Shown here piece after piece: positions 2,728 to 64,000 of a DNA stretch of 64,000 nt. This DNA comes from Octopus sinensis (Eukaryota). Numbering within the stretch: the stretch's first letter is position 1; the number at the start of each line of letters is the position of its first letter. The notes beneath the pieces are model-generated. The model saw only the letters and a list, made by a program, of their open reading frames with translations. It searched no databases and was not told the DNA's origin. The stretch is from contig NC_043007.1 of the NCBI RefSeq assembly GCF_006345805.1, positions 52,266,001-52,330,000 of the forward strand. Direction: 5' to 3'. The position numbers were made by a program, and so were the translations under genes.

Positions 2728-5700
2728 TGAGTTGGTTGGTTGGCATCCTTATTGTCTCGGGAGTTGCGCATAAAGTAGTCTAGTCCGGCTTTTATATTTC
2801 CTGTCCTGATACATTTCCTGCTGTGGCTGTGTAGTCCTATCCTGGACAAACACTCCCTCTGGCAGGTACCGCAAATGTAGCGAAGACTGTAATGCCATAG
2901 TTTCTGGTTGACGTCTTTTCTTGTCTTTTCATTTCTCCTCTCTCTCTCTGTCACTCCTTTGTATTCCCTCTTTTACGGTACGTCGCCAGTCTCCACGGTT
3001 GCCGGCAACTGCCTCCCAACCGCTAATATTGATGTTGCAAGCCTTCATGTCCCTTTTGCAAACATCCTTGTAACGTAAGAACGGTCTACCCACAGACCTA
3101 GTACCCCTAGCAAGCTCTCCGTAGAGTATGTCCTTGGGGATTCTGCCATCTTTCATACGGCTAACATGCCCAAGCCATCTCATAGGTCTTTGTGTGAGGA
3201 GTGCAAACATGCTTGGTATTCCTGCTTGCTTGAGGACATCTTTGTTGGGGATATGATTCTGCCATTTGATACGGAGGATTTTCCGGAGGCAGCGCAGGTG
3301 AAAGATGTTTAGGCAACGCTCTTGGCGTGTGTATAGCGTCCAAGTCTCACTTCCATACAGTAGAGTGCTAAGTACACATGCCTGGTAGATCTTCATTTTC
3401 GTGGTCTTGGTCAGCTTATTGTTGTCCCAAGCCCGTTTGGAGAGTTGGGCCATCACAGCAGCTGCCTTGCCAATGCGTATATTGAGCTCAGCATCAAGGG
3501 ATAGGTTGTAGGTGACGGTAGAGCCAAGATAGGTAAACTTCTCCACCTCTTGCAATCTGTGGTCTCCAATATGTATGTTTGGGATGTCCGATGTAGCCTG
3601 ACCCATGATGTTGGTCTTCTTAAGGCTGATAGCTAAGCCAAAGTCGTTACATGCTTGCTCAAAACAGTTAATGAGCCTTTGGAGGGCTTCTTCTGTGTGT
3701 GATACCAGAGCGACATCATCAGCAAATAGCATCTCCTTGATCAGGACGTTTCTGATTTTGGTCTTGGCACGCAGGTGTGAGAGATTGAACAGTTTCCCGT
3801 CACTTCTACTGTGCAGAAACACTCTATCATCTGATGTCTGAAAGGCATGTGAGAGTAAGAGCGAGAAGATGCCAAACAATGTAGGAGCGAGGACATAACC
3901 TTGCTTTACCCCATTTTTTATTTGGAAGGCGGCTGATGTTGAACCATTGTGCTGTATGGTGCCTTGCATATCATCATGGAAAGACTTGATGATCCTCAGC
4001 AGCTTTGGTGGACATCCGATTTTTTGGAGCAGGATGAAGAGGCCTGTTCTGCTTACCGAGTCAAAGGCCTTTGTTAGATCAATGAAGGCCATATATAATG
4101 GCATTTTCTGCTCTCTGGACTTCTCCTGAAGTTGGCGTATGGAGAATATCATATCGATAGTTGATCTGCTTCTTCTAAAGCCACACTGCGATTCCGGATA
4201 GATTTGAGAAGCAAGTAGTTATAGCCTGGCCAGGATAACGCGGGCAAAGGTCTTTCCAACAGTGCTTAGAAGAGATATTCCACGGTAATTGTTACAATCA
4301 CCATGGTCACCTTTGTTTTTGTAAAGCGTTATGATGTTAGCATCCCGCATATCCTGAGGGACTGTACTCTCTTCCCAGCACTGACACAGAAGCTTATGAA
4401 GGTGCCGAAGCAGGATGGTGTTTTTGCCGGCTTTGATGATCTCTGAGGGGATGCCGTCTTTTCCCGGAGCCTTGTTTCTTGCTAGGGAGTCAACAGCCTT
4501 GGTGAGCTCTGCTATAGATGGCGGACTGTCAAGTTCGCACATGACTGGCAAGATCTTGACACTCTCGACTGCAGCCTCAGCCACTGTAGTCTCCCGTGAG
4601 TAGAGATCCTGGTAGTGCTCCACCCATCTATCCATTTGCTTGCTTTGATCCCTGATGAGATCTCCAGTAGTTGATTTCAGAGGGGCTGACTTGGTTGCGG
4701 ATGGACCGAGGGCCTTCTTCAAACCGGCATACATCCCATGGGTGTTGCCCCTGTCAGCAGCTAACTGGATACTCTGACAGATTTCCTGCCAATACCTATT
4801 TGCACAGCGTCTGGCTGTCAGTTGGGTTTTATTTCGTGCCTTTGTAGAAGCGTCACACTCGTATTGCATCAGAGCTGCACGCTTTGCTTCGATAACTGGC
4901 TCCAGCTCTGAGAGCCCAGCATCGAACCAATCTGGGTTTTGCCTTTCTCTCGTGCCGAAAGTATCTATTGATGTCGTATACAAAGCTTCCCTGATATAGT
5001 TTCACCTACTTTCAGCAGAGGAGGTTGGGCAGCTACTGAGGGCAACCTTGATAGAAGCAGCAAAACATTTTCGCAGTGTAGGGTCCGAGGTTCTGGTAGT
5101 GTTAATGTGTGGTCGGCCCACTTTCTTGGAGCGATGGACTTTTTTAGGCAGAATCCTCACCCTACTTCTAATTAGTGAGTGGTCTGTGTCACAATCCGCG
5201 CTGTGGTAACTACGGGTCAATAGAATAGAATTCAGAAAGGATCTCCGTGTAATGATGAGATCCAGCTGATACCAGTGGTGAGATCTTGGATGTCTCCAAG
5301 ATGCCTTGTGGGATGGCTTGTTGGTAAAGAATGTGTTTGTGATGCACAGGTTATGGTATGTGCAGAATTTGAGTAGTCTCTGACCATTGTCATTCATGTT
5401 GCCAATACCAAAGTGTCCAACACAAATGGGCCACGAATCATGGTCAGATCCCACGCGAGCGTTAAAATCCTCTAGAAGGTAGATATTTTCAGTCGTTGGT
5501 ATATTTTCTATGACACAGTTGAGATCTTTGTAGAACTAGTCCTTGGTCTCCTCTGAGCTGTAGAGAGTGGGAGCATAGATGCTGAGTAGATGTACTGAGC
5601 CAGAAGAAGTCAAGAGGTGCAGTGAGAGGATACGCTCAGTGCCTCCTGATGGTGGTTCTATTGAGGAGAGTAATGAGTTTCTCACTGCAAAGCCAACGCC

Positions 5701-6279: not shown

Positions 6280-6440
6280 TACAGTAAGCACATGATCTGC
6301 AATTTGTGGGGAGGGAACTTATTTCATCAACCCTAAAGGAGAAAAGGCAAAGTCAACCTTGGTGGAATTGGAAACCGGAATATGAAGACAGACAAAATGC
6401 TGCTAACCACTTTGTCTGGCATGCTAACAATTCTGCCAGA
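6280..6440 (-). mobile_element. Meta-domain SINE, degenerate
   Basis: AGGCAAAGTCAACCTTGGTGGAATT...ATGCTAACAATTCTGCCAG is the reverse of the SINE head/body. Confidence 0.7.
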
Positions 6441-6582
6441 TCATCATCATCGTTTAACGTCCGCTTTCCTTGCTAGTATGGGTTGAACGATTCTGACTGA
6501 GGGCTGGCAAACCAGATGGCTGCACCAGATTCCAATCTTGATCTGGCAGAGTTTCTACAGCTGGATGCCCTTCCTAACAGCA
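6441..6582 (-). mobile_element. RTE-derived 3' UTR / SINE-like fragment with (GAT)n tail
   Basis: CATCATCATCGTTTAACGTCCGCTTTCC...CAGCTGGATGCCCTTCCTAAC is the reverse complement of the 3' end at 45830-45962. Confidence 0.75.
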
Positions 6583-6739
6583 TATATATATATATATATA
6601 TATCAATTAGAAAAAAACTACCTTTTATCAATTCAAAATGAAAAATTAAATTACACCATCTAGAAAATTGCATATAATAGAAATATTAAATATAAATTGA
6701 ATTTATCCCTGTAAGTTTGGAATAATATTCCCTCAAATT

Positions 6740-6849: not shown

Positions 6850-7500
6850 CATAGGGTATTCAGGTTAATTTTCATGATTTTCTTTAATGTTTCCTTTCTT
6901 CAGGAACTGCTTCATGTATTGGAGGACAGTCAATGACATTGGAGGTCATAAAGATTAAAGGTGAAAATGAGAAAATGGAAGATTGGACACCATCTGAATA
7001 TTAGAAAAGAGTTGATGGCTGCTGCCCAATGCTCTATGAGTACTGTAAAGGCTGTATGACATAACATGGAAAGCTGCAATGGAGACTACAAAGCTGTGAC
7101 CAGCAAGAAAGACACAACAGGTGTTCTGAGAACATGCTGGAATTCATCCCCACATCCTTAGGCTCAATTCAGATGGTTGTGTGAAGGTTCTGAAGCCTGT
7201 AGTTAATCTATGACTGAAGAGGGCTGTTGCTGGAAGGCCATATGTATGTAGCAGGATTCAGCTCCTCACCAGCCCTCTGGAAAGTGGTTGAGCGAGAATG
7301 TCCAGAATTTCACCAGCCTTTATTTCTGGCCTTCTAACTCCCCCGATGGTAATCCCATGATTTATTGTGTATGAAGTGAAGTTGAGAAACCAGTTGTTCT
7401 GTCTGCAACATCAAGGCCGAGTTGGTGGCCAAAATCAAGGTGGTGTTTGAAAATCTTCAAGGGACACAGTGACAAATGCATATACCATGTTCCTGATCTG
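6850..7500 (+). mobile_element. Decayed Tc1/mariner-superfamily transposase remnant
   Basis: 7170-7490 translates across frameshifts to VLKP..AGRPY..QDSAPH..WLSEN..FWPSNSP..NPMDY, typical of the DD(x)D catalytic C-terminal half. Confidence 0.6.
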
Positions 7501-7603
7501 TTGTGAGGCTATGGTAGAAGGTGAGAGAGGCTACTTTGAGTAAAGTGTTATTTCCATGCTGTGATCTAATGGATATCATACATATATGTATATATATATA
7601 TAT

Positions 7604-23785: not shown

Positions 23786-23991
23786 ATATATATGAAATTT
23801 TGAATTTAGTTCATGGATCCCTTGTATTACGTTTGCAAACCACCAGGGGTCCGTGGACCACTGGCCCGGTGATTAAAATGTTGTAGGAAAATAATCGCAA
23901 GACAGATTCTTTTTCCAGCTGATCCAACCGGCAGGAGACCTAGTGGTAGACTAAGAGCGAGCTGATTGGATAACATCCATCGTCTCAAGAC

Positions 23992-24572
23992 GGTGAGCTG
24001 GCAGAAACGTTAGCACGCCGGATGAAATGCTTAGCGGTGTTTCGTCTGTCGTTACGTTGTGAGTTCAAATTCCGCCGAGGTTGACTTTGCCTTTCATCCT
24101 TTCGGGGTCGATAAATTAAGTACCAGTTCCGCACTGGGGTCGATGTAATCGACTTAATACCTATGTCTGTCCTTGTTTGTCCCCTCTATGTTTAGCCCCT
24201 TGTGAGTAATAAAGAAATAGGTATTCGTCCGTCTTTACGTTCTGAGTTCAAATTCCGCAAAGGTCGACCTTGCATTTCATCCTTTCGGGGGTCGATAAAT
24301 TAAGTGCCAGTTACGCACTGGGGTCGTTGTAATCGACTCAATCCTTTTGTCTGTCCTTGTTTGTCCTCCCTGTGTTTAGCACCTTGTGGGTAGTAAAGAA
24401 ATAGGTATTTCGTCTGCCGTTACGTTCTAAGTTCAAATTCCGCCGAGGTCGACTTTGCCTTTCTTCCTTTCGAGGTCGATTAAATATGTACCAGTTGTGT
24501 ACTGGAGTCGATATAATCCACTGCACCTTCCCCCAAAATTTCGGGCCTTGTGCCTAGAGTAGAAAAGGATAA
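23992..24572 (+). mobile_element. Tandem trimer of the Meta-domain SINE
   Basis: One head followed by three body units (starts near 24050, 24235, 24420); the first two end in the GTCC(C/T)C..AAAGAAATAGG tail, the third in the GGGCCTTGTGCCTAGAGTAG tail. Confidence 0.85.
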
Positions 24573-53784: not shown

Positions 53785-53893
53785 AATATATATATAAATA
53801 TTCTTTTATTCTTTTACTTGTTTCAATCAATTGACTATGGCCATGCTGGAGCTCTGCCTTTTATATATATATATATAGATAGATAGATAGATA

Positions 53894-54054
53894 GATGGCA
53901 AATATACCTCACATTGTTGTGCAGTTACTGCCTATACCTCGTTCAGAGATTTATTATTGCTTGTATACATTTTTTCAAGATCAGTGACATAAAGTTACTG
54001 GAAAAAGGATATAAATATTTGCATTGGGACTCCTTTCATCGAAAACCAGTGATT
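53894..54054 (+). repeat. 5' partial copy of hammerhead-bearing monomer A (~351 nt)
   Basis: 53894-53975 repeats at 56097-56175; ends in AAAACCAGTGATT, duplicated at 55894-55906. Confidence 0.75.
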
Positions 54055-55893
54055 TTTTTCGAGTTGTTGAAGTCGGAGCATTAATGTGAGTAATTAATTG
54101 TTGATTTTTGCTGGTCGTCGTTATCGGTGTTAATATTGTTTAATTTTTGTGTTGTTATATTTTCCCATCGAGGAAAATGGAGAAGTCACCAGCAGGCGGC
54201 CACAGCAATGCAGCCGCAACTGGGAGAGGAGCAGAGGAAAGAACTTATGGAATATTAGTCGACGACAAGAAAATAAAAGATTGCGAGAAGCTGATAAAGA
54301 AGGAGGGTGAAACGATAAAATTAATGCCAACCGAAGAGCTGACGAACAGCATACTAAAGAAAACGGTGACCTACAAGACCATGAAGGTCGCCACAAAGAA
54401 AATAGAAATAGCAGCAGTACAAGAAATTGAAAAAGTGTTGGAAGGCATTAAAAAGTTTATAACCTTCAGAACGAGAAGCAGAAGGTATGCCACTGTGGAT
54501 GTGCGATTCAGATCGGAGGAGGAAGCATTAAAATATGCGAGGCAATTCGTTCGGAAGAATGGATTCTTTTGCCATCATATTGCGGAAAACTTGTGGTGAA
54601 AGTTCAGGTCGGCCAAGTGCCCCCCGAGCTGGAGGAGGAATGGCTAATGACAGCCATTATGTATAACATGAAAGACGGGGCCAGAATACTAAAGGCCACC
54701 AGAACATATATGCAGGACTACTGGGGCTATGGATTGGAATTAACAATCCAGGCAACAGTAGAAGACCTCAATAGAATAACTGAGGAGATAGTGTTGCCTG
54801 GCGGTTTCTCACTGAGAATGAAGGTGGAGGGCAGTCTGCCGGTGTGTTTTGAATGTGGCGAAAAGGGACACATGAAGGCGAGATGCCCACAGAAACAGAG
54901 AGAAAATCAAGAAAATATCGAACAGGCAGAGACGGTCAAGAGTAGTGAAAAAGCAGCGGAAGAGGGTTTCACAACAGTGGAAAGAAAAAGAAGGAGGAGC
55001 GTTAGGGCAAGCCCGCCACCGACTGACCAGAAAAAGAAGAAAGAAGAGGTGGAAAAGGAAGACGTAACGAGAAAGAAAGATAACAAAAGTAAGGCGAAGA
55101 AGGGAAGTGAAAAAATAATTAAGAAGTTGTGTGACAATGAGCCAGAGAAGGAGGAAACAAGGTTGAGGATGACATGTGATTTGGCAGAAGTTTCAGAGAC
55201 TCAGCTACAAGAGGGTAAGATGGAGAAACTGTTAATAGTGGAGATAGAGAAGAAGATTGTTCCAGCCTCAGGAAGAGTACAGAGGAGCATATATTGGGAG
55301 AGGAAGAAAGGAGAAAGCCTAGAGGATGGAAGAAACAATGGAGTTTTTTTACCTATTCAAAAAACAAGGAAGTGGAAAAGGAAATTGTGAAGTTTAAAAA
55401 CATCGTAAGGGTGAAAATGCCCAGAGACATGTACTCTGAGAGAGTGAAAGGTTTGGTCGCCGATAAGGTGGTTTATGAAAGACTTAGAGACAGATGCGGT
55501 GATGGAATCGACCCTGGCGGAACGATAGTGGAGTTCAATGAGCTGCCACCAGTAATCGAACTGAGAGAGCTGGAGCAGTATATGAAGCGTTAAAAGGAAA
55601 AAAAAAAAGTTTTAAAAAAAAAGAGAAAGGAAGAGTATTTTTGAAGAAAAAATGACATTTAATGAACGGAAAAAAAGAGGAAAAATCAGATAAAATAAGA
55701 CTGTAATAACAGAGTGTAAAAACACTCCAATGGTACTGCATGTGGAGTGGGGCCCATGCAGCCATTTCATTTTCCATTATTATATAATATTCATTTTCAT
55801 CTGTTTTATATTTATTGTCCCCACTGTAGTGTTGTGTCTGTCCTTGTAGTGTCCCCTCTGTGTTGTGGCCTTAGTGCCAAATAAAGAAATACA
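54055..55893 (+). mobile_element. Insert A: ORF1/Gag-only retroelement (no RT/EN) with AATAAA tail
   Basis: Bounded by a 13-bp duplication (54042-54054 / 55894-55906, 1 mismatch); AATAAA at 55880; 3' tail similar to the SINE tail. Confidence 0.8.
54177..55593 (+). pseudogene. L1/Tx1-ORF1p-like protein (~470 aa): RRM-like region, CCHC knuckle CFECGEKGHMKARC, K/E-rich linker, conserved C-terminal domain; two frameshifts
   Basis: ORF pieces 54147-54599, 54569-55390 and 55294-55593 are collinear with insert B ORFs (YATVDVRF vs YATVDARF; LPPVIELREL vs LPGVIEQEEL). Confidence 0.8.
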
Positions 55894-56175
55894 AAAACCG
55901 GTGATTGTCGTGCGCTGATGATGGGTCAATACCCAGAAACTGCAGTCCATGTGTATCACTTAGGCTGATGAGGGAAGGATGACCTCCCTTTGCAAATACC
56001 GATAGGGCACAGAAAGTGTGCCTATAGCCAGCTGGAGATGTTCTCCTGGGGCTACAAGCTACAGTAACATCCACCCTTAGTGGTTAGCCATATTGAGATG
56101 GCAAATATACCTCACATTGTCATGCAGTTACTGTCTATACCTTGTTCAGAGATTTATTATTGCTTATATATATTT
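55894..56175 (+). repeat. 3' copy of hammerhead-bearing monomer A
   Basis: Contains the HHR and the ~80-bp segment repeated at 53894. Confidence 0.75.
55901..55959 (+). ncRNA. Type I hammerhead ribozyme (minimal, palindromic stem III)
   Basis: CUGAUGA 55915-21; stem II UGGGU-CAAU-ACCCA; GAAA 55936-39; palindromic ACUGCAGU; cleavage triplet GUC ending 55947; extended stem I GUGAU/AUCAC with internal loop, proximal pairs weak. Confidence 0.85.
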
Positions 56176-56224
56176 ACATTATTTACATTGGATGGATATG
56201 TGTCCTCATTTTGTTTGTTGTTAC

Positions 56225-56266
56225 CACAACGTTTCCGCTGATTTACTCTCCAGCTTTCATCAGGTG
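56225..56266 (-). ncRNA. Minimal hammerhead motif of a PLE terminal fragment (56176-56315)
   Basis: Minus strand CAC-CUGAUGA-AA-GCUGG..CAGC-G-GAAACGUU-GUG; stem I CAC/GUG. Confidence 0.65.
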
Positions 56267-56574
56267 ACCTTCTGGAATTTTGAACCCAACCCTGGGTTCT
56301 CATTTCTAGGGTGTTTTTTTTTTAAGGAAGGATACAAAAATATTAGGTTTATAAGCCCTAAAATACACACTATAATTGCCTACAGGCTACTAACCCCAAG
56401 ATTCCAAGTTCAATTCCAGGCATTGACTTGAATAAATAACATCAGCAACAAAATTTCTGTTGTCAGTGTGTCACACTTTACCCTCCCCACCTCTCTCGCT
56501 ATTCAATAACACTTCCTCATGTTGGGATGAGAGTTATAGGAGGCATAAAGAAAGTTAGGACGGTGGTGAAGACA

Positions 56575-56627
<53 letters not shown>

Positions 56628-56719
56628 AAGAAAAATAGAGGGAGAGAGAGACAAAGAAATTTAGGAAGAATTGATGACATTTTATTAAAAGTATTAGTGT
56701 TGATGGTGGAAATGGGAGT

Positions 56720-56757
<38 letters not shown>

Positions 56758-57789
56758 TGTGTGTGTGTGGATATATAAGAGAAAGAAAGTGATGATGTAC
56801 AACTTTCCTGGACAGAAATTCCTGTGCCCAGCTTACTGAACCAACTACTGAACACTATCATTTTTGCTTTATTATTTGCTTTCTTTAATACAGCATGTGT
56901 ATGTGTGTGTGTGTGTGTGTTTGTGTGTACATATATACATATACACACACACACACACACACATAAAATACACTTTAATTGAATACAGTTTCCCCAAAAT
57001 TCAGCATCAATTTAAGAGAGTTGATGATGTTTTTATTAAAAGTAGTAGTGTTGATAGTAGCAGTAGGAGTAATAATAAGAGTGACAGAAAGAGAGACCGA
57101 ACACTGAACCAACATACTGAACTAATATACTGAACGATGGTAATGGGGTGATAGTAATAGTATAAGCTGTAGTTATGATAGAGGCAGAGGTGGCGGTGAT
57201 AATGGTGGTGGTGGTGGTGGTGATAGCTGAGACAGTCAGGGATGACAGTGAGAGTAAGTGATGTGAAAGACAGTGGTGATGGTGGTAGAGGGGGAAGGCG
57301 GTGAAGTCAAAGGTATTGATGGTGGTGGCATCAGAAGTCTGAATGATATGTGTATGGCAGATGTAGTGGCGATGGTGGTAGTACTGTTGTTTATCATACA
57401 GTTTTGCAATAAGTTCCAAGTGGACAAGTTATATCAAATTGTTTTGATGAAAATTGTTCATTGCTTGAAAAATATTGTTCAAGTTTAATAAAATTTATTA
57501 TGTACCCAATGCATGAAGTGTCATTGTTGGGCGCAAAGCCTAATGAAGAGCTCTCCACAGGAGCTAGCTTAAAAGTCACCTGATAAGCAGCTTTTAAGCT
57601 AGTATTATATATATCGACATGATTTATTATTCAGTATTATTACAATTGTCTGATGGAAACTCTGAGTAACAATTTGTGAAGACTTTCTCAGCTTTGAGAA
57701 AATAGTACATATGCATTTTTAGCAAAACACCAAAATTTACAGTACCAAAATTAAATTATATCATCTTCATTATCATAATCATTATCATC

Positions 57790-59000
57790 CTCATCATTTT
57801 ACGTCTGTTTTCCATGCTGGCATGGGTTGGATGGTTTGAATGAAGCTTGTCAAGCCAGTAGGCTGCACCAGGTTCCAATCTGATCTGGCAAGGTTTCTAC
57901 AGCTGGATGTCTTTCCTAACGCCAACCACTCCAAGAGTGTAGTGGGCGCTTTTTACATGTCACCGATACGGGAGCCAGTCAGGTGACACTAGCATTGAAC
58001 ATGTTCAGATGGTGCCTTTTACATGCCACCGGCACAGGAGCCAGTCAGGTGGAACTGGCATTGGCCATGACTATGATTTCACTTGACACAACAGGTTTTC
58101 TCAAGCACAGTGTATCACCTGATGATTCAAGGGTACTTTTAAATGGGTTGGTTATGCGACACTGGCATTGGCCATGGCTGTGATCTTACTTTACTTGCCA
58201 GGTCTTCTCAATCACAGCATATCTCCAAAGGTCTCTGTCTCTTGTCAATGCTTCTGTGAGACCTAACGTTCGAAGGTCATACTTCACCACCTATATCATC
58301 TTGGGTCTGCCTCTTCCACAAGTTCCTTCCACTGTTAGGGTGTGACACTTCTTTACACAGATGTCTTCCTCCATACACAGCACATGGCCATACCAGCACA
58401 GTCATCTCTCTTGGACACCACATTTGATGCTTCTTACATCCAACTTTTCTCTCAGGGCGCTTACACTCTGTCATGGGCGCACAGTGACATTACACATCCA
58501 GCAGACCATACTAGCTTCATTTCTTTCAAGCCTACGCATGTTCTCAACAGTCATGGTCCATGTTTCACTGCTGTGTAGCATGGCTGTTCGCACACATGCA
58601 CCATACAGTCTACCTTCTACTCTGAGTGAGAGGCCTTTTGTTACCAGCAGAGATAGGAGCTTTCTGAACTTCACCCAGGCTATTCTTATTCTAGCAGCTA
58701 CACTCTCAGAGCATCCACCCCCACCATAGACTTGATCACCTAGGTAGTGGAAGCTAACAATTACTTCTAGCTTCTCCCCCTGGCATGTAATGGAATCTGT
58801 TTTCTGTATATCTTCGGTGTTTGTTGCCCCTGTGCATCTGCCACACACAAAAGCTATCTTCTCGATTAACCTTATTTTAATATTGCTACACCTCTTATGT
58901 GCCATAGCTTACACTGGGTACATATGGAATTTCTATCTACACCTTTTCTACAAATTGAGCAGGCCATCTACCTGAAGGGGTTTGTGATTTGTCTACCTTC
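57790..59000 (-). mobile_element. RTE LINE 3' fragment (RT C-terminus + 3' UTR)
   Basis: LEVIVSFHYLGD..VAARIRIAWVKFRKL..MLHSSETW; 3' UTR matches 45830-45962. Confidence 0.85.
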
Positions 59001-59649
59001 CTTCTTACTAGGACTTTGGTTTTTGCTAGATTGACTTGTAGCAAAAGTAATTTACGCTGTCGTTATCTGTGAGATGTTTTCATCGTGGTTGTTTAGGCGT
59101 AAATACCTGGATGTTGGCCCCACAAGCATTTTGTTGTTTGTATTGATTGGTTTCCAGCCATCCAGTCATGTTGGTGTAATAGTTTGTTTTTCCTTACACG
59201 GGGAAATTAATCACCAGCTCTAGGAGCCCACTGATCACTATAAGAATGGCAGTTCGTGACTGCTCTAGGTCATGCCACTCATATCTGACACCAGCTAGTC
59301 TCCGCTTTCACCTTCACCAGACACCTGCCTACATCGTTGCCATATGATCACTACACAACCAGCAGACCAACTGCTGCTTCTACACAGCACCAATCAGTAC
59401 ATCAACTTTGTCTACAAGATCAATAATCCAGCCTAAACACGAAGTCTCTTATACATCTTTGTTGTAACCTGTTATATTAATTTATTTCATGTATGGCAAT
59501 CATTTTATTTTATAATGGAGAACACTTCAGTTTCATCTCACGTTGTATATCCATTTTCACATTTTCGATTTTTTTATTTACCCAACTTCATTGCCATCTT
59601 CATTATAGACTCTAAGGCCCTTTGATTCTAGATCTTGCTTTTACATCTA

Positions 59650-60850
59650 AAACTTCATCTCTAGTTCTGGTAGTGACTCAGCTTTTAGAGCAAGGTCATC
59701 AACATAGAGACCCCAGGGGCAAGCCTATCTTGAATTCCTCTGTTATTGCCTGGAGGACTATGATGAATAAGAGGGGGCTTAGGACTGATCCTTGGTGAAA
59801 CTCTACTTTTACCTGGAATTCTTCACTATACTTGTTGCCAACCCTCATCTTACTGACACCATCCCTGTACAGGGCTTGTACAGCTCTCACCAACTATTTG
59901 TCTATCCCTAGTTTTCACATTGACCACCAGATAAAGTATTGGGAGATCCTGTCAAAGGCTTTCTCCAAGTCAACAAAAGCCAGGTACAGACATTTATCTT
60001 TGGCTAGGTATTTCTCTTGCAGTTGCCTTACCAAAAATATAGTATCAGTGGTGCTTCTACTTGGCACAAAACCAAACTGCATCTCATCTAGGCTAACTCT
60101 CTCCCTAATTAGTAGAGCTATGATGCTCTCCATGACTTTCATCATCTGATCCAGAAATTTGATACCCCTGTAGTTATTTCTCTCTAAAGCATCACCTTTA
60201 CCTTTGTAGCAGTTGACTATGGTGCTGCTACATCAGTCAAGGCAGCAAACTGGCAGAAACGTTAGCACGCCGGCCGAAATGCGTAGCCGTATTTCTTCTG
60301 CCGTTATGTTCTGGGTTCAAATTCCGCCGAGGTCGACTTTGCCTTTCATCCTTTCAGGGTCGATAAATTAAATACCAGTTACGCACTGGGGTCGATGTAA
60401 TTGACTTAATCCGTCTGTCTGTTCTTGTTTATCCCCTCTGTGTTTAGCCCCTTGTGGGTAGTAAAGAAATAGGTATGACTCTTTTGTGAACTATCTGATT
60501 TCCAATACCACTGACTAGATCATCTCCTCCACCATCAGATATTTTAAGTATCTCAGTGGTGATTCCTGATGGGCTGGGGGTTTTCCTTGCCTTCATATCC
60601 TTAATTGCTTTATCTACCAGGGTACTGTCAATTCGGGTAGCTGGCCAACATTTGGCAGGCTCTCTTCTTCCCATTCATTTTCCATGTTCAGCAGTCTTTC
60701 ATAATGGCATCTCCAAGCCTCTTTCTTTGCAGAATCATTAAACGCAATTGCACCATTATCCATGCGGACACAATTTTCTCTCACACACTGTCTTTAAATC
60801 TGAAATACTTCAGTTCTTTGGTCCTCACATCACTGAACATTGGCAAACTT
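59650..60850 (-). mobile_element. RTE LINE RT fragment interrupted by a SINE
   Basis: QFGFVPSRSTTDTIFLVRQLQEKYLAK..FVDLEKAFDR; HQGSVLSPLLFIIVL; KTPSPSGITTEILK. Confidence 0.85.
60239..60472 (+). mobile_element. Meta-domain SINE, full length, nested in RTE
   Basis: AAGGCAGCAAACTGGCAGAAACGTTAGCACG to GTAAAGAAATA; the RTE reading resumes on either side. Confidence 0.9.
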
Positions 60851-61213
60851 CTTTTCTGCTTCTCCCTTGGCTATATATACCTGTCCCTTGACTATCAGTC
60901 TATACCTGTCTTGGTTATATATACTTGTCTTGGCTATATATACCTGTCTCCTAGCTTCCCTTCATAAACTTTCCTCTCATAAACTTGCCTGCACAGTTCA
61001 TGCTTTCAATCATCACCAATATTATTATTATTAGTAATCTTTATATATATATAAAACTGAGAATGTGTGTCTGTCTGTGTGTTTCCCTAGCAATATCATA
61101 TCTTCTCCACTATTCTCCACGTGTTAAAAGTGAAACAAAAATATTTCTCTATTTTATGTCAGATACTTTCACCTTAACAATAAAATAATAACAATTGAAT
61201 TAAATGTAGTAAA

Positions 61214-61639
61214 AGAATGGTTGTATACTGTCAATTTAACATGACAGTAGGGGATTACACTGCCCCTGTTTAGGAAGCATCGATGCCTCCTGATGGCTTC
61301 GACACATTTTTTTCCTGTGTCCTTATATATTTACGAAGGGGTGACAAATACCCCCAGCAGCCAGGCCTGCATCTAGAGACACGCATGTTTCAGGATCTTT
61401 GTCCATCATCGGTCTAGAGTAGCAGAAGCCTGGCAGCTGCAGATATCTGTCCCGACTTCGTAAATATATATATCTAATTTTCGGTGAAGTTTATTCACTG
61501 ATTACCAAAATCAGAAATATTAAGTTTCTAAATATCTCATAGAGTTATGTATGGTGGTGGGGCGATAGAATGGTTGTATACTGTCAATTTAACATGACAG
61601 TAGGGGATTACACCGCTGCTGTTTAGCCCTAGGAAGCAT
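61214..61639 (-). repeat. Inverted, uninterrupted ~1.2 copies of hammerhead-bearing monomer B (~360 nt period)
   Basis: GGAAGCAT anchor at 61273 and 61632; reverse-complement match to 63452-63709 and 61651-61862. Confidence 0.9.
61372..61418 (-). ncRNA. Type I hammerhead ribozyme (monomer B, empty-site copy)
   Basis: Minus strand UCUAGA-CCGAUGA-UGGA-CAAAGA-UCCU-GAAACAUGCGUGUC-UCUAGA: 6-bp stem I, near-palindromic stem III, GUC triplet; U4>C and 10.1/11.1 U-U variants. Confidence 0.75.
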
Positions 61640-61862
61640 AGGAGGCATCGATGCTTCCTAGGGTTAAACAGCGGCGGTGTAATCCCCTACTGTCACGTTA
61701 AATTGACAGTATACAACCATTCTATCACCCCACCACCGTACATAACTCTATGAGATATTTAGAAACTTAATATTTCTGATTTTGGTAATCAGTGAATAAA
61801 CTTCACCAAAAATTAGATATATATATTTACGAAGTCAGGACAGATATCTGCAGCTGGCGGGC

Positions 61863-63451
61863 AGTGTTTGTGTCGGTTATTTTGTATTACGGTTATTGTG
61901 TATTGCGGTTGTGAGTTGGATTTTGTTGTTGGAAGGTGTTACGGCGTGGTGAATTGTTGAAGTTTTTGTTGGGTATACAAGCCCAAACTTATGCGGGAGC
62001 AGCAGGCAAAGGCCTGGCTGCGAGCGAACTACAGTTGGAAGAAATAGTTATCGAGAAGTAGAGTTTGAGGAAGTACTACGACAGCTTCAAGAAGGAAGGT
62101 GATTGTCTGAGGGACACACCGCCTGAAGACGAAGTGAAAGAAGCTGAGAAGAGAATTATAACGTACAGAACGTGGAGTGTGGTTTCGAAGAGAATAGAAA
62201 TAGCAGAGGTGGAAGAAATCGAGAAGTGTCTACAGGAAATTAAAGGAAAAACTACCTTCTACAATAGAGGTAGAAAATACGCGACAGTAGACGCTCGTTT
62301 TGAAAACGAAGACGAAGCGAAGAGAAACGCCACAACAATATTGAAATCCGAAAAATGGGTGTTACTACCTAGCCATTGTGGAAAAAGAGCAGTGAGAATA
62401 CGGATTAGTAAAATTTCACCGGAACTAGACACGGAAAGAATTGTAGCGGCAATAATATTCAACTGCAAAGAGAGCGTCGACATACTGAAGGTAGAAAAGT
62501 TGAAAGAAATAAAGTGGTGGGGTTATGCGGTGCAGGCTTTGCTTCACATAACCATGCCAGACCTGTATAACATCCCTGAGGAGTTGGTGTTCCCCGACGA
62601 GACACGTCTCAGAGTCGTGGTGGAAGGGAGACCCCCAGTGTCTTACAAATGTAAAATTAGAGGCCACATGAAGGATATGTGTCCGCTAAGAGAAGTACAA
62701 GAGAAGACGATAACACTGGAGGCTTTGACAGAGGAGTTACAAAAGGCGAATGTGGAATTGCAAGTGGAAGAGGAAATTGTAACTACAGATAATGTAGAAA
62801 GTGGTGACGAGTTGGTGAAGGAGAAAGAAAAGGAAAAAACAGAAGTAAAAGAGGATAGAAAGAGAACGCAAGCACAAAAAAGAAAAAAGCTAAAAAGAAG
62901 TCTACCGACGAGATAGAGGATCAAACGCACGATGAGAGAGATACAGAAACGAAAGTGAGTGAAGTTTCAATGTGGGAGGAAGAGAAAGAATGGGAAAGAA
63001 AAATGGAAGAACAACTGAAAATATGTAAGGAAGGACGAAGGCCAAAAGGAAGAAATCTCAAAGCTATAATGTTGTACAAAAAGGACAAAGAAATTGAGAA
63101 GAAATTAGCGAATATGAAAAATCTAACTAGAGTAAAACTGAACCCGAAGAAATTCGATGACCAAATAAAGGCGGCAATTGTAGAAAGAGAGACAGTAATG
63201 AAATTAATAAATGTGTATTCAAATATAGCTGTAGGCGTAATGCAATACATTCGATATGACAGTTTGCCAGGTGTTATAGAACAGGAGGAGTTACTCGATT
63301 ATATTACGGATGAACGCCCCGGATAGCACAATTGTAATTGTAAATATTTCATTGTCATACCATCCTTTTTGTATTTTTGTTATATGTACCCCATGTCCTG
63401 TATTGTAATGTCCCCTCTCCATTCGGGCCATTGTGCCTATAATAAAGATTC
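61863..63451 (+). mobile_element. Insert B: ORF1/Gag-only retroelement with AATAAA tail
   Basis: Bounded by a 17-bp duplication ATCTGCAG(C/T)TGGCGGGC at 61846-61862 and 63452-63468; AATAAA at 63441. Confidence 0.85.
62065..63326 (+). pseudogene. L1/Tx1-ORF1p-like protein homologous to insert A; degenerate knuckle SYKCKIRGHMKDMC; one frameshift in an A-run near 62890; upstream stop
   Basis: ORFs 62065-62916 and 62955-63326; visible alignment with the insert A translation over N-terminal, knuckle and C-terminal blocks. Confidence 0.8.
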
Positions 63452-63709
63452 ATCTGCAGTTGGCGGGCTTCTGCTACTCTAGACCAATGATGGACAAAGA
63501 TCCTGAAACATGCGTGTCTCCTCTTCATAAATATATAAGGACACAGGAAAACAAAATGTGTCGAAGCCATCAGGAGGCGTCGATGCTTCCTAGGGCTAAA
63601 CAGCGGCGGTATAATCCCCTACTGTCACATTAAATTGATAGTATACAACCATTCTATCGCCCCACCACCGTACATATCTCTATGAGATATTTAGAAATTT
63701 AATATTTCT
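63452..63709 (+). repeat. 3' copy of monomer B with a damaged hammerhead (63478-63520)
   Basis: CCAAUGA core (G5>A) and a deletion right after GUC-UC relative to the copy at 61372. Confidence 0.85.
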
Positions 63710-64000
63710 AATATATGTAGTAAGTAATAATTAAAATCAAACTAAAGTAATATAATCGTAACATAACAAAAGTAAAAATAGCAATTGGTATAAAATCGCA
63801 TCAATGACTTGAACTTGAATAAGTGGTTTCACATGAATGGGAATAAATTAAAAATAAAATTAGCGTGCAGAAATGGAATAGTCCAGATGGATAATAAAAA
63901 ATTAAATTAAAGAAAAGACTATTGTCTATAAAGTATACAATGTAGAGAAAAAACAAGATTTGAACACATTGAGGAAAACACCTTCGAAAAGAGTCTTGGT

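Follow-up and report, generated by a model that had tools for sequence, protein, structure and literature searches.

ORF1-Only LINE Derivatives Inserted Recurrently 5′ of Hammerhead-Like Repeats in Octopus Genomes

The window analyzed here is a stretch of 64,000 nucleotides from Octopus sinensis (assembly GCF_006345805.1, contig NC_043007.1, positions 52,266,001 to 52,330,000 of the forward strand). It contains two short repeats, named mon1 and mon2, each with a type I hammerhead ribozyme (HHR) motif, and each is interrupted immediately 5′ of that motif by an insert (ins1 and ins2, respectively). The inserts encode a protein of the kind specified by open reading frame 1 (ORF1, or Gag) of long interspersed nuclear elements (LINEs). 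The features of the locus are listed in Table 1, and the origin of the inserts, their relationship to the hammerheads, and the possible basis of their placement are discussed below.

Structure of the Two Inserts

Each insert is flanked by a target-site duplication (TSD), which is 13 bp long for ins1 and 17 bp long for ins2, with one mismatch in each. Both inserts end in an A-rich motif with AATAAA (...AATAAAGAAATAC or ...ATAATAAAGATTC) and have no poly(A). These duplications and ends had been described in the initial annotation, which was made from the letters of this DNA, and they are confirmed here. The same annotation had reported two homologous but divergent CCHC-knuckle proteins with neither a reverse transcriptase (RT) nor an endonuclease (EN), and its coordinates proved exact: the two proteins are 40% identical over 115 aa (E 3e-29) and, in their C-terminal parts, 27% identical over 93 aa (E 4e-11), the CCHC knuckle is the sole domain seen by Pfam in the insert ORFs, and tblastn with a LINE ORF2 as the query revealed no RT or endonuclease in ins1 or ins2. 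Both coding regions are broken. That of ins1 is split over three frames; in that of ins2, a stop interrupts the N-terminal part, the frame shifts near 62916, and serine replaces the first knuckle cysteine. Both inserts are dead elements, each from a different subfamily of a diversified clade of non-autonomous LINE derivatives in octopods. Members of this clade are ~1.6-1.9 kb each and keep only ORF1 and the 3′ tail of an L1/Tx1-group LINE.

Table 1. Features of the mon1/ins1 and mon2/ins2 regions (positions within the window; UTR, untranslated region; SINE, short interspersed nuclear element).
Feature	Position	Strand	Description
mon1, 5′ part (A)	53894..54041	+	directly after (TA)n(GATA)n microsatellite
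ins1 TSD, copy 1	54042..54054	+	AAAACCAGTGATT
ins1	54055..55893	+	1839-bp ORF2-less (Gag-only) LINE derivative
ins1 5′ UTR	54055-54176		G/T-rich
ins1 ORF1 pieces	54177-54596, 54569-55387, 55294-55593	+	three frames
ins1 3′ UTR			A-rich
ins1 conserved 3′ tail	~55834-55893
ins1 TSD, copy 2	55894..55906	+	AAAACCGGTGATT
mon1, 3′ part (B)	55907..56175	+	with first ~80 nt of second monomer; by blastn
mon1 type I hammerhead (HHR1)	55908..55954	+	by core nucleotides and three-helix layout; same motif at L002 7734
HHR1 helix I	55908-55914 (5′ strand), 55948-55954 (3′ strand)	+
HHR1 core CTGATGA	55915-55921	+
HHR1 helix II	55922-55935	+	5 bp
HHR1 GAAA	55936-55939	+
HHR1 helix III	55939-55946	+	AC/GU, 2 bp, palindromic loop UGCA
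HHR1 C17	55947	+	predicted cleavage site
tRNA-like SINE copy	60230..60475	+	with shared ~50-nt tail; outside the inserts
mon2, uninterrupted (empty-site) copy	61214..61639	-	inverted; hammerhead ~61365-61425
mon2, direct copy	61651..61845	+	5′ of insertion
ins2 TSD, copy 1	61846..61862	+	ATCTGCAGCTGGCGGGC
ins2	61863..63451	+	1589-bp ORF2-less LINE derivative, second subfamily
ins2 ORF1 pieces	62065-62916, 62955-63326
ins2 3′ tail	~63392-63451
ins2 TSD, copy 2	63452..63468	+	ATCTGCAGTTGGCGGGC
mon2, 3′ of insertion	63469..63730	+	with degenerate hammerhead
ins2-side hammerhead, degenerate	63484-63490 (core CCAATGA), 63505-63509 (GAAAC), 63516-63518 (GTC)	+

LINE Ancestry and the Shared 3′ Tail

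Ten loci, designated L001-L010, were fetched from three Octopus genomes via annotated homologues of the insert proteins and were chosen blind to hammerheads. The window shows 68-83% DNA identity to Octopus loci. One of them, L003 from O. vulgaris (OX597840.1), contains a full-length LINE with an ORF1 that is 36% identical to that of ins2 and an ORF2 of 1132 aa comprising the domains Exo_endo_phos, RVT_1, and zf-RVT, i.e., an apurinic/apyrimidinic endonuclease (APE), an RT, and a zf-RVT domain. Its 3′ tail, TTGTCCCCTCTTTGTTGGCCCCTTGTGGGTAAATAAA, is the same ~50-nt tail as that of the inserts. The same full-length element was found in O. sinensis (L009, CM016867.1). ORF2, with its APE, RT, and C-terminal zinc-binding parts, is absent from ins1, ins2, and the elements of L002, L005, L006, L008, and L010 but present in L003 and L009, and the inserts are therefore regarded as derivatives and not as autonomous LINE members. 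A HAL1-like combination is observed in them: a selected ORF1, no ORF2, and the retained 3′ end of the partner. By sequence, they are ORF1-only derivatives of an L1/Tx1-group LINE. A non-autonomous Tx1/L1 family of ORF1-only type had been suggested in the initial annotation, together with a search for full-length ORF1-plus-ORF2 relatives; the tail and ORF1 of L003 and L009 bear out this derivation, and these two loci supply the relatives. The relatives of the L003 ORF2 are L1-group elements from fish, plants, and fungi, and their source names did not separate Tx1 from L1.

The 3′ ends are not of the A-rich or poly(A) LINE type, as they read ...AATAAAGAAATAC, ...ATAATAAAGATTC, or ...AAATAAAATAAAACA, each behind the conserved ~50-nt tail. 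AATAAA is a part of this conserved tail, which is common to the autonomous LINE and a SINE, and has no bearing on polyadenylation either way. The SINE is tRNA-like and repeated in the window, and its 3′ end aligns with the last ~50-60 nt of both ins1 and ins2. A degenerate pattern of the tail gave five matches in the 64-kb window versus zero expected. The matches, at 24178, 24362, 55850, 60430, and 63409, are all on the plus strand. In addition to the copy in Table 1, further SINE copies end at 24221, 24405, and 32220, and two copies lie back to back at ~23990-24405. Because the SINE carries the tail of the inserts, it probably marks a shared RT partner. Two SINEs (6440-6676 and 7106-7520) are inserted within the Gag-only element of L002, the first with the shared tail and the duplication GGTTATGATGTTTC. 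Hence, SINE activity postdates the Gag element, whose target the SINE does not share.

In L003 (1-13026) and L009, the full-length LINE forms head-to-tail arrays with a period of ~5.28 kb and at least three units visible per species, in which the tail of a unit is ~50 nt from the next 5′ UTR. Such arrays could have originated by array-forming insertion, template jumping, or unequal crossing-over. The 49-nt spacer between the tandem units of L003 was considered as a hammerhead relic and rejected, since it has no helix II and differs in L009.

The ORF1 Protein

ORF1 encodes two RNA recognition motifs (RRMs), then a CCHC knuckle, and lastly a C-terminal domain. Residues 1-215, modeled with AlphaFold (predicted local distance difference test, pLDDT, 86.8), take the form of a tandem RRM, and the best PDB matches of the model are the tandem-RRM proteins IMP3 (RRM12), HuR (RRM1-2), and UP1. 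With zf-CCHC, this predicted fold corresponds to an ORF1 of the RRM-plus-CCHC type. A profile search of solved structures with ORF1 matched the CCHC knuckle and nothing else. An exhaustive profile search of a representative library retrieved 661 homologues, and all of the source-named ones that were looked up (27/27) come from O. bimaculoides, O. vulgaris, or O. sinensis. On the other hand, non-exhaustive searches returned no homologue with the ins2 ORF and one protein with an 84-sequence alignment, because low-complexity K/E/Q-rich linkers swamped the word index. In exact database look-ups, neither P0003 nor the window's own ORF was on record.

ORF1 is kept by purifying selection among the Gag-only subfamilies: the ratios of nonsynonymous to synonymous substitution rates (dN/dS) between subfamily pairs are 0.27, 0.09, and 0.11, with dS near saturation. 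The protein is therefore needed while ORF2 is absent. The ORF1 of fish L1-group LINEs (e.g., P0168) shows a weak, collinear similarity to octopus ORF1 (hhalign probability 74%, E 3e-5). The octopus proteins fell below the match level of the Pfam RBD_ZCCHC3 models, and the ZCCHC3 paper is silent on any retroelement origin.

Host Repeats and Their Hammerhead Motifs

The mon1 unit is ~350 nt long and present in 1.25 units, its first 80 nt being repeated at 56096-56175 with 92.5% identity. Its 3′ part is 82% identical over 226 nt to L002 7715-7939. The mon2 repeat is a head-to-head pair with 212-nt arms (61428-61639 and 61651-61862) that are 96% complementary. The minus-strand copy reads ...atctgcagctgccaggcttctgctactc... 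at the unoccupied site, and since this left copy is continuous across the position of ins2, it serves as the empty site. No similarity between mon1 and mon2 was detectable by blastn, in agreement with the earlier statement that the two host monomers have no obvious sequence in common apart from the hammerhead core. Among the other hosts, L008 is a single unit in (TA)n and L010 is composed of an inverted part plus two direct units, while (TA)n flanks are also seen at L002 as well as L008. Short HHR-bearing units (170-400 nt), insertion in (TA)n, and tandem or inverted partial copies are thus all found in the host repeats, which look like Penelope-type or retrozyme insertions. A (TA)n target and an inverted or partial-tandem arrangement of copies characterize Penelope-like elements and non-autonomous retrozymes (PMC8557442). 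No Penelope-type RT or GIY-YIG domain appeared among the window ORFs scanned, in which no dedicated search for them was made.

The HHR1 string, CUGAUGA-UGGGUCAAUACCCA-GAAA-C-UGCA-G-UC, starts 8 nt past the ins1 duplication. The counterpart at L002 7734 in O. sinensis differs from HHR1 in helix I by changes that preserve pairing. On the ins2 side, the core begins 15 nt past the duplication and the 3′ strand of helix I is deleted; this hammerhead is a dead copy. The empty mon2 sister copy on the minus strand has the core CCGATGA, starting at 61412, and a perfect 6-bp helix I (UCUAGA/UCUAGA), and canonical cores occur in mon2 relatives, namely CTGAAGA in L005 and CTGATGA in L010 (7118). The conserved type I core (C3-U4-G5-A6-N7-G8-A9...G12-A13-A14...A15.1/U16.1, H17) is present at 55915, at L002 7734, in L005, and at L010 7118. 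It is not present in the mon2 copies of the window (CCGATGA, CCAATGA) or in L008 (TTGATAA), and these deviant copies are read as decayed.

Over eight hammerhead copies, GAAAC...GUC is invariant and compensatory changes occur in helices I and II, although this covariation comes from only these eight copies, aligned by hand. Pair 4 of helix I is U-A, C-G, or U-G, and pairs 3 and 4 of helix II alternate between G-C and A-U. Helix III has 2 bp among the copies, with the loops UGCA, UA, or AUGCGU. A type I layout and a 2-bp helix III with a palindromic loop agree with the description of metazoan HHRs (PMC4209133, PMC7229834). Minimum free energy folds of single hammerhead motifs were no better than those of shuffled sequences.

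A second CTGATGA at 55966 was rejected as a hammerhead, having no GAAA partner and being absent from the L002 counterpart. L005 contains a further hammerhead-like motif, CTGATGA-tttcatttgaat-GAAAC-agttcta-GTC, in two inverted copies at 1943 (minus strand) and 2038 (plus strand); neither is occupied by a Gag element, and the motif may represent a third HHR repeat family.

Insertions at Hammerhead Sites

Outside the window, six independent insertions were informative, and four of them are located in the same two repeat families at most 15 nt 5′ of an HHR core. The element of L002 is 5′-truncated and of another subfamily, its Gag protein sharing 36-47% aa identity with that of ins1. It occupies the site of ins1 in a repeat of the mon1 family (82% identity), with AACCAGTGATTGTCACACA-CTGATGA directly behind its tail. 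The L005 element, which has lost its 3′ end by deletion, interrupts a mon2-like repeat with its 5′ junction 4 nt ahead of the core position; the empty sister copy has the CTGAAGA core. L008 has an intact ORF and an imperfect TSD of ~20 bp that ends 4 nt before the decayed TTGATAA...GAAACTAGTC. In L010, 13 nt separate the tail from the canonical CTGATGA...GAAACTAGTC, within a tandem of mon2-like units.

The elements at HHR sites have no blastn match to one another or are at most 67% identical, whereas their host repeats are 72-83% identical. As the elements are far more diverged than the host repeats, they represent independent insertions rather than duplicates of a single composite. Five or more subfamilies, all very divergent from one another, are found in the sense orientation 4-15 nt upstream of an HHR core; among SINE copies with the same tail, 0/8 lie beside an HHR. 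A rough chance estimate, in which a 30-nt window in a single orientation is combined with ~10 cores per 200 kb, gives ~7.5e-4 per insertion and, for four of six, roughly 5e-12, with a core density (~1 core per 20 kb) taken from our own HHR-enriched sample. We consider it probable that the ORF1-only LINE derivatives have a real and heritable preference for the site 5′ of hammerheads, a judgment that does not extend to the mechanism. Targeting of the region upstream of hammerheads had been proposed in the initial annotation, for which a majority of homologs in HHR-free flanks would have been the contrary outcome; in this sample, four of the six lie at HHRs.

Several points weigh against this interpretation. 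The sample is small (11 junctions in all), and annotated gene models served to pick the loci. In O. bimaculoides, several 3′ ends are lost to assembly gaps, including that of L001, which is uninformative for this reason, and likewise ends at L007. The element of L006 is not at an HHR but has a clean 18-bp TSD inside a SINE, a mini-insertion in L010 (see below) is also away from an HHR, and L004 and L007 are tail-to-head pairs without an HHR, from which it follows that the preference is not absolute or depends on the subfamily. No Rfam hammerhead model matched the window at the gathering score, nor did any match 10.5 kb or 100-nt stretches at E<=10, and the HHR assignment of the host repeats therefore depends on the core nucleotides, the layout of three helices, and the compensatory changes. 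This assignment is good at the family level, with ribozyme activity being putative. Accordingly, of the type I hammerheads noted earlier at 8 and 15 nt past the duplications, the distances stand, while the ins2-side copy is dead and no Rfam support was obtained. With regard to the mechanism considered in the next section, the trans-acting partner is a candidate, and a dedicated HHR-specific autonomous LINE with the specificity in its ORF2 protein (ORF2p) could account for the placement. Moreover, the read-through model has hints in its favor, namely a single transduction event and imperfect duplications, and the latter are explicable by age.

The pairs in L004 (4447-6395) and L007 (5965-8686) consist of a 5′-truncated copy followed by a full-length copy, 0-11 nt apart. 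This is the layout of Penelope-like pseudo long terminal repeats (pLTRs), and template jumping by the RT, from the 5′ end of an RNA onto the 3′ end of the next, would be expected to produce it.

Possible Mechanisms of Site Preference

The inserts arose by target-primed reverse transcription, with duplications of 13-20 bp, and ORF2p would have been supplied in trans by autonomous relatives. The site preference appears to reside in the Gag-only elements and not in the shared RT/EN, because SINEs sharing the tail insert at other places and the two repeat families have different sequences at the nick site. The inferred first-nick positions are 19-32 nt from the core and have no motif common to mon1 and mon2, which, together with the untargeted SINE, argues against a simple endonuclease consensus.

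The mechanism that we tentatively prefer is homing by read-through, i.e., by flank homology. Briefly, transcripts of Gag-only elements would run past the tail into the adjacent hammerhead region, the hammerhead flank of the RNA would anneal to the nicked DNA of other monomers, and priming guided by the flank would cause the insertion site to be inherited. Initiation assisted by the 3′ flank occurs in R1, to which the proposed homing may be likened. A 67-nt insertion with a perfect 16-bp TSD (CTTGAACTTGCACCAA) is found in L010 (7970-8036). It is composed of 21 nt of unassigned origin, approximately the last 37 nt of an L010-type element, and a 13-nt HHR-side flank (AAGCTAGCAAAGA), and it stops where the HHR core would begin. 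This content suggests that the template was a read-through transcript of an HHR-site copy and that priming took place inside the flank. The mini-insertion lies 900 bp from a parent-like copy, in an intron of a Wtap-domain gene.

Alternatively, a sequence-specific endonuclease or DNA-binding domain may be contained in the ORF2p of a dedicated partner, whose target would be inherited by the Gag-only elements; this explanation is possible but doubtful. Insertion into other repeats is a well-known habit of Tx1-clade LINEs, the tail is also present in an autonomous relative, and the SINE and the Gag-only elements could each rely on a LINE subfamily of their own. However, the first-nick sites of mon1 and mon2 share no motif, the autonomous copies seen (L003, L009) are in head-to-tail arrays and not at HHRs, and the SINEs with the same tail are dispersed.

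It is also conceivable, though unlikely, that the hammerhead is a working part of the life cycle: Gag-only transcripts would extend into the neighboring ribozyme, and self-cleavage or pairing with another monomer would yield a defined 3′ extension of target sequence that guides priming at further hammerhead repeats. In a weaker version, the repeat and ORF would also circulate as a coding circular RNA. If true, homing would be RNA-templated and heritable, and a LINE derivative would parasitize both a LINE RT and a Penelope/retrozyme ribozyme. The element of L006 has no HHR-derived nucleotides after its tail, and cleavage-defined ends are thus at least not obligatory. Template switching into and out of retrozyme RNA was dismissed as the source of the duplications, being less parsimonious than staggered nicks.

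Targeting by the ORF1 protein seems quite improbable. In such a case, the protein with two RRMs and a knuckle would bind hammerhead or retrozyme RNA (nascent transcripts or R-loops) and tether the ribonucleoprotein. It is the sole encoded protein, it is under strong purifying selection, and its predicted fold is an RNA-binding one. Furthermore, HeT-A and TART provide a precedent for Gag-directed localization. Against these points, the autonomous LINE has the same ORF1 architecture, binding to HHRs is putative, and a tether alone would not yield reuse of a site at the nucleotide level.

Very little speaks for the other reading offered in the initial annotation, a ~2-kb, ribozyme-processed coding retrozyme, in which the repeat and ORF would be one mobile unit excised by the hammerhead and copied by a Penelope-type RT. 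The composites do lie in (TA)n (window 53861-56185, L002, and L008), the preferred Penelope target (PMC8557442), and in L002 the 5′-truncated element plus the downstream repeat has (TA)n on either side, but lone repeats are also located in (TA)n. The duplications bound the ORF part alone, empty monomers exist, elements without the repeat are present in L006, L004, L007, and the L010 mini-insertion, the tail is common to an APE/RT LINE and a SINE, and the ORF parts are far more diverged than the host repeats. The proposal is thus unsupported and very unlikely.

Finally, a regional coincidence of ORF2-deleted LINE fragments in a repeat-rich neighborhood, although Octopus DNA is repeat-dense and the first two cases come from one window, is extremely unlikely in view of four more independent cases in three genomes with the same positions and orientation (see the chance estimate above).

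Comparison with Known Systems

Functionally, the octopus elements resemble mammalian HAL1, which also comprises ORF2-less LINE derivatives with a selected ORF1, a LINE 3′ end, and lasting lineages. Unlike HAL1, which has a poly(A) end and no known site preference, they possess a non-poly(A) tail shared with a SINE and are recurrently adjacent to hammerheads. The likeness to HeT-A of Drosophila telomeres is functional only: HeT-A is Gag-only, uses the RT of another element, and occupies one kind of site to which Gag is thought to guide it, but it belongs to the Jockey group and targets chromosome ends with no endonuclease step and no TSD.

Insertion at one position in multicopy sequences is shared with APE/RT LINEs such as Tx1L in Tx1D, Keno, Kibi, Mutsu, R1, and R2, and some of the Tx1-clade or R-type LINEs use a co-transcribed flank or ribozymes. 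These LINEs, in contrast, are autonomous, and their targets are RNA genes, microsatellites, and DNA transposons. R2 has a hepatitis delta virus-like ribozyme at its own 5′ end (PMC3774820), whereas the ribozyme motif in the octopus case belongs to the target and is 3′ of the insert.

The host repeats, with ~350 nt, a type I HHR, and (TA)n, correspond to metazoan retrozymes and the HHRs of Penelope pLTRs (PMC7229834, PMC4209133, PMC8557442). The likeness extends to inverted or partial-tandem copies and, in one host family, to a U-U at the base of helix II. Retrozymes and Penelope pLTRs are non-coding, however, and the ORF-bearing inserts in octopus are passengers. Fish L1-group LINEs with a ZCCHC3-type ORF1 (e.g., P0168) have the same ORF2 architecture (29% identity over 99% of ORF2) and an ORF1 built on the same plan, with CCHC knuckles behind two RNA-binding domains, but the similarity in ORF1 is weak.

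In the literature searched, neither a hammerhead-bearing retroelement as a LINE target nor an ORF1-only lineage combined with such a target was found. Insertion beside hammerheads is apparently an undescribed target preference of a known kind of element and not a new kind of element. The new system suggested in the initial annotation holds insofar as the arrangement is undescribed in that literature, but the ORF1, TSD, tail, and HHR repeat all belong to known classes.

LINEs with site-specific insertion provide natural models of targeted integration that avoids double-strand breaks, and the engineering of R2-type systems to this end is under way. The same address used over divergent subfamilies and two unrelated targets, with the same-tail SINE elsewhere, points to a determinant other than an endonuclease, for which RNA flank homology and the Gag protein are candidates. 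The arrangement has three layers of parasitism, with a Gag-only element depending on a LINE RT inside a ribozyme-bearing, Penelope-type repeat, and would be a long-lived invertebrate counterpart of mammalian HAL1 and Drosophila HeT-A.

Other Features of the Window

Rfam scans of the window identified no ribozyme and just sub-threshold mir-like matches. A palindromic (GT)n...(AC)n microsatellite at 56894-56976 gave matches of the mir-297 and mir-466 type (67 bits versus a gathering score of 90), and these were rejected as miRNA genes, being sub-threshold low-complexity look-alikes. The remnant of another LINE occupies 57770-60230 on the minus strand; its RT similarity at 59717-60223 is weak (27% to the L003 ORF2), its 3′ end has a ...CATGCCAGCATGGAAAACAGACGTAAAATGATGAGGATGATAATGA-type tail, and the SINE with the Gag-element tail is inserted at 60230-60475. 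A separate, unrelated LINE fragment at 2932-4152 (minus strand) contains a 407-aa ORF with an RVT_1 domain (E 3.5e-23) that is 28% identical to the L003 ORF2.

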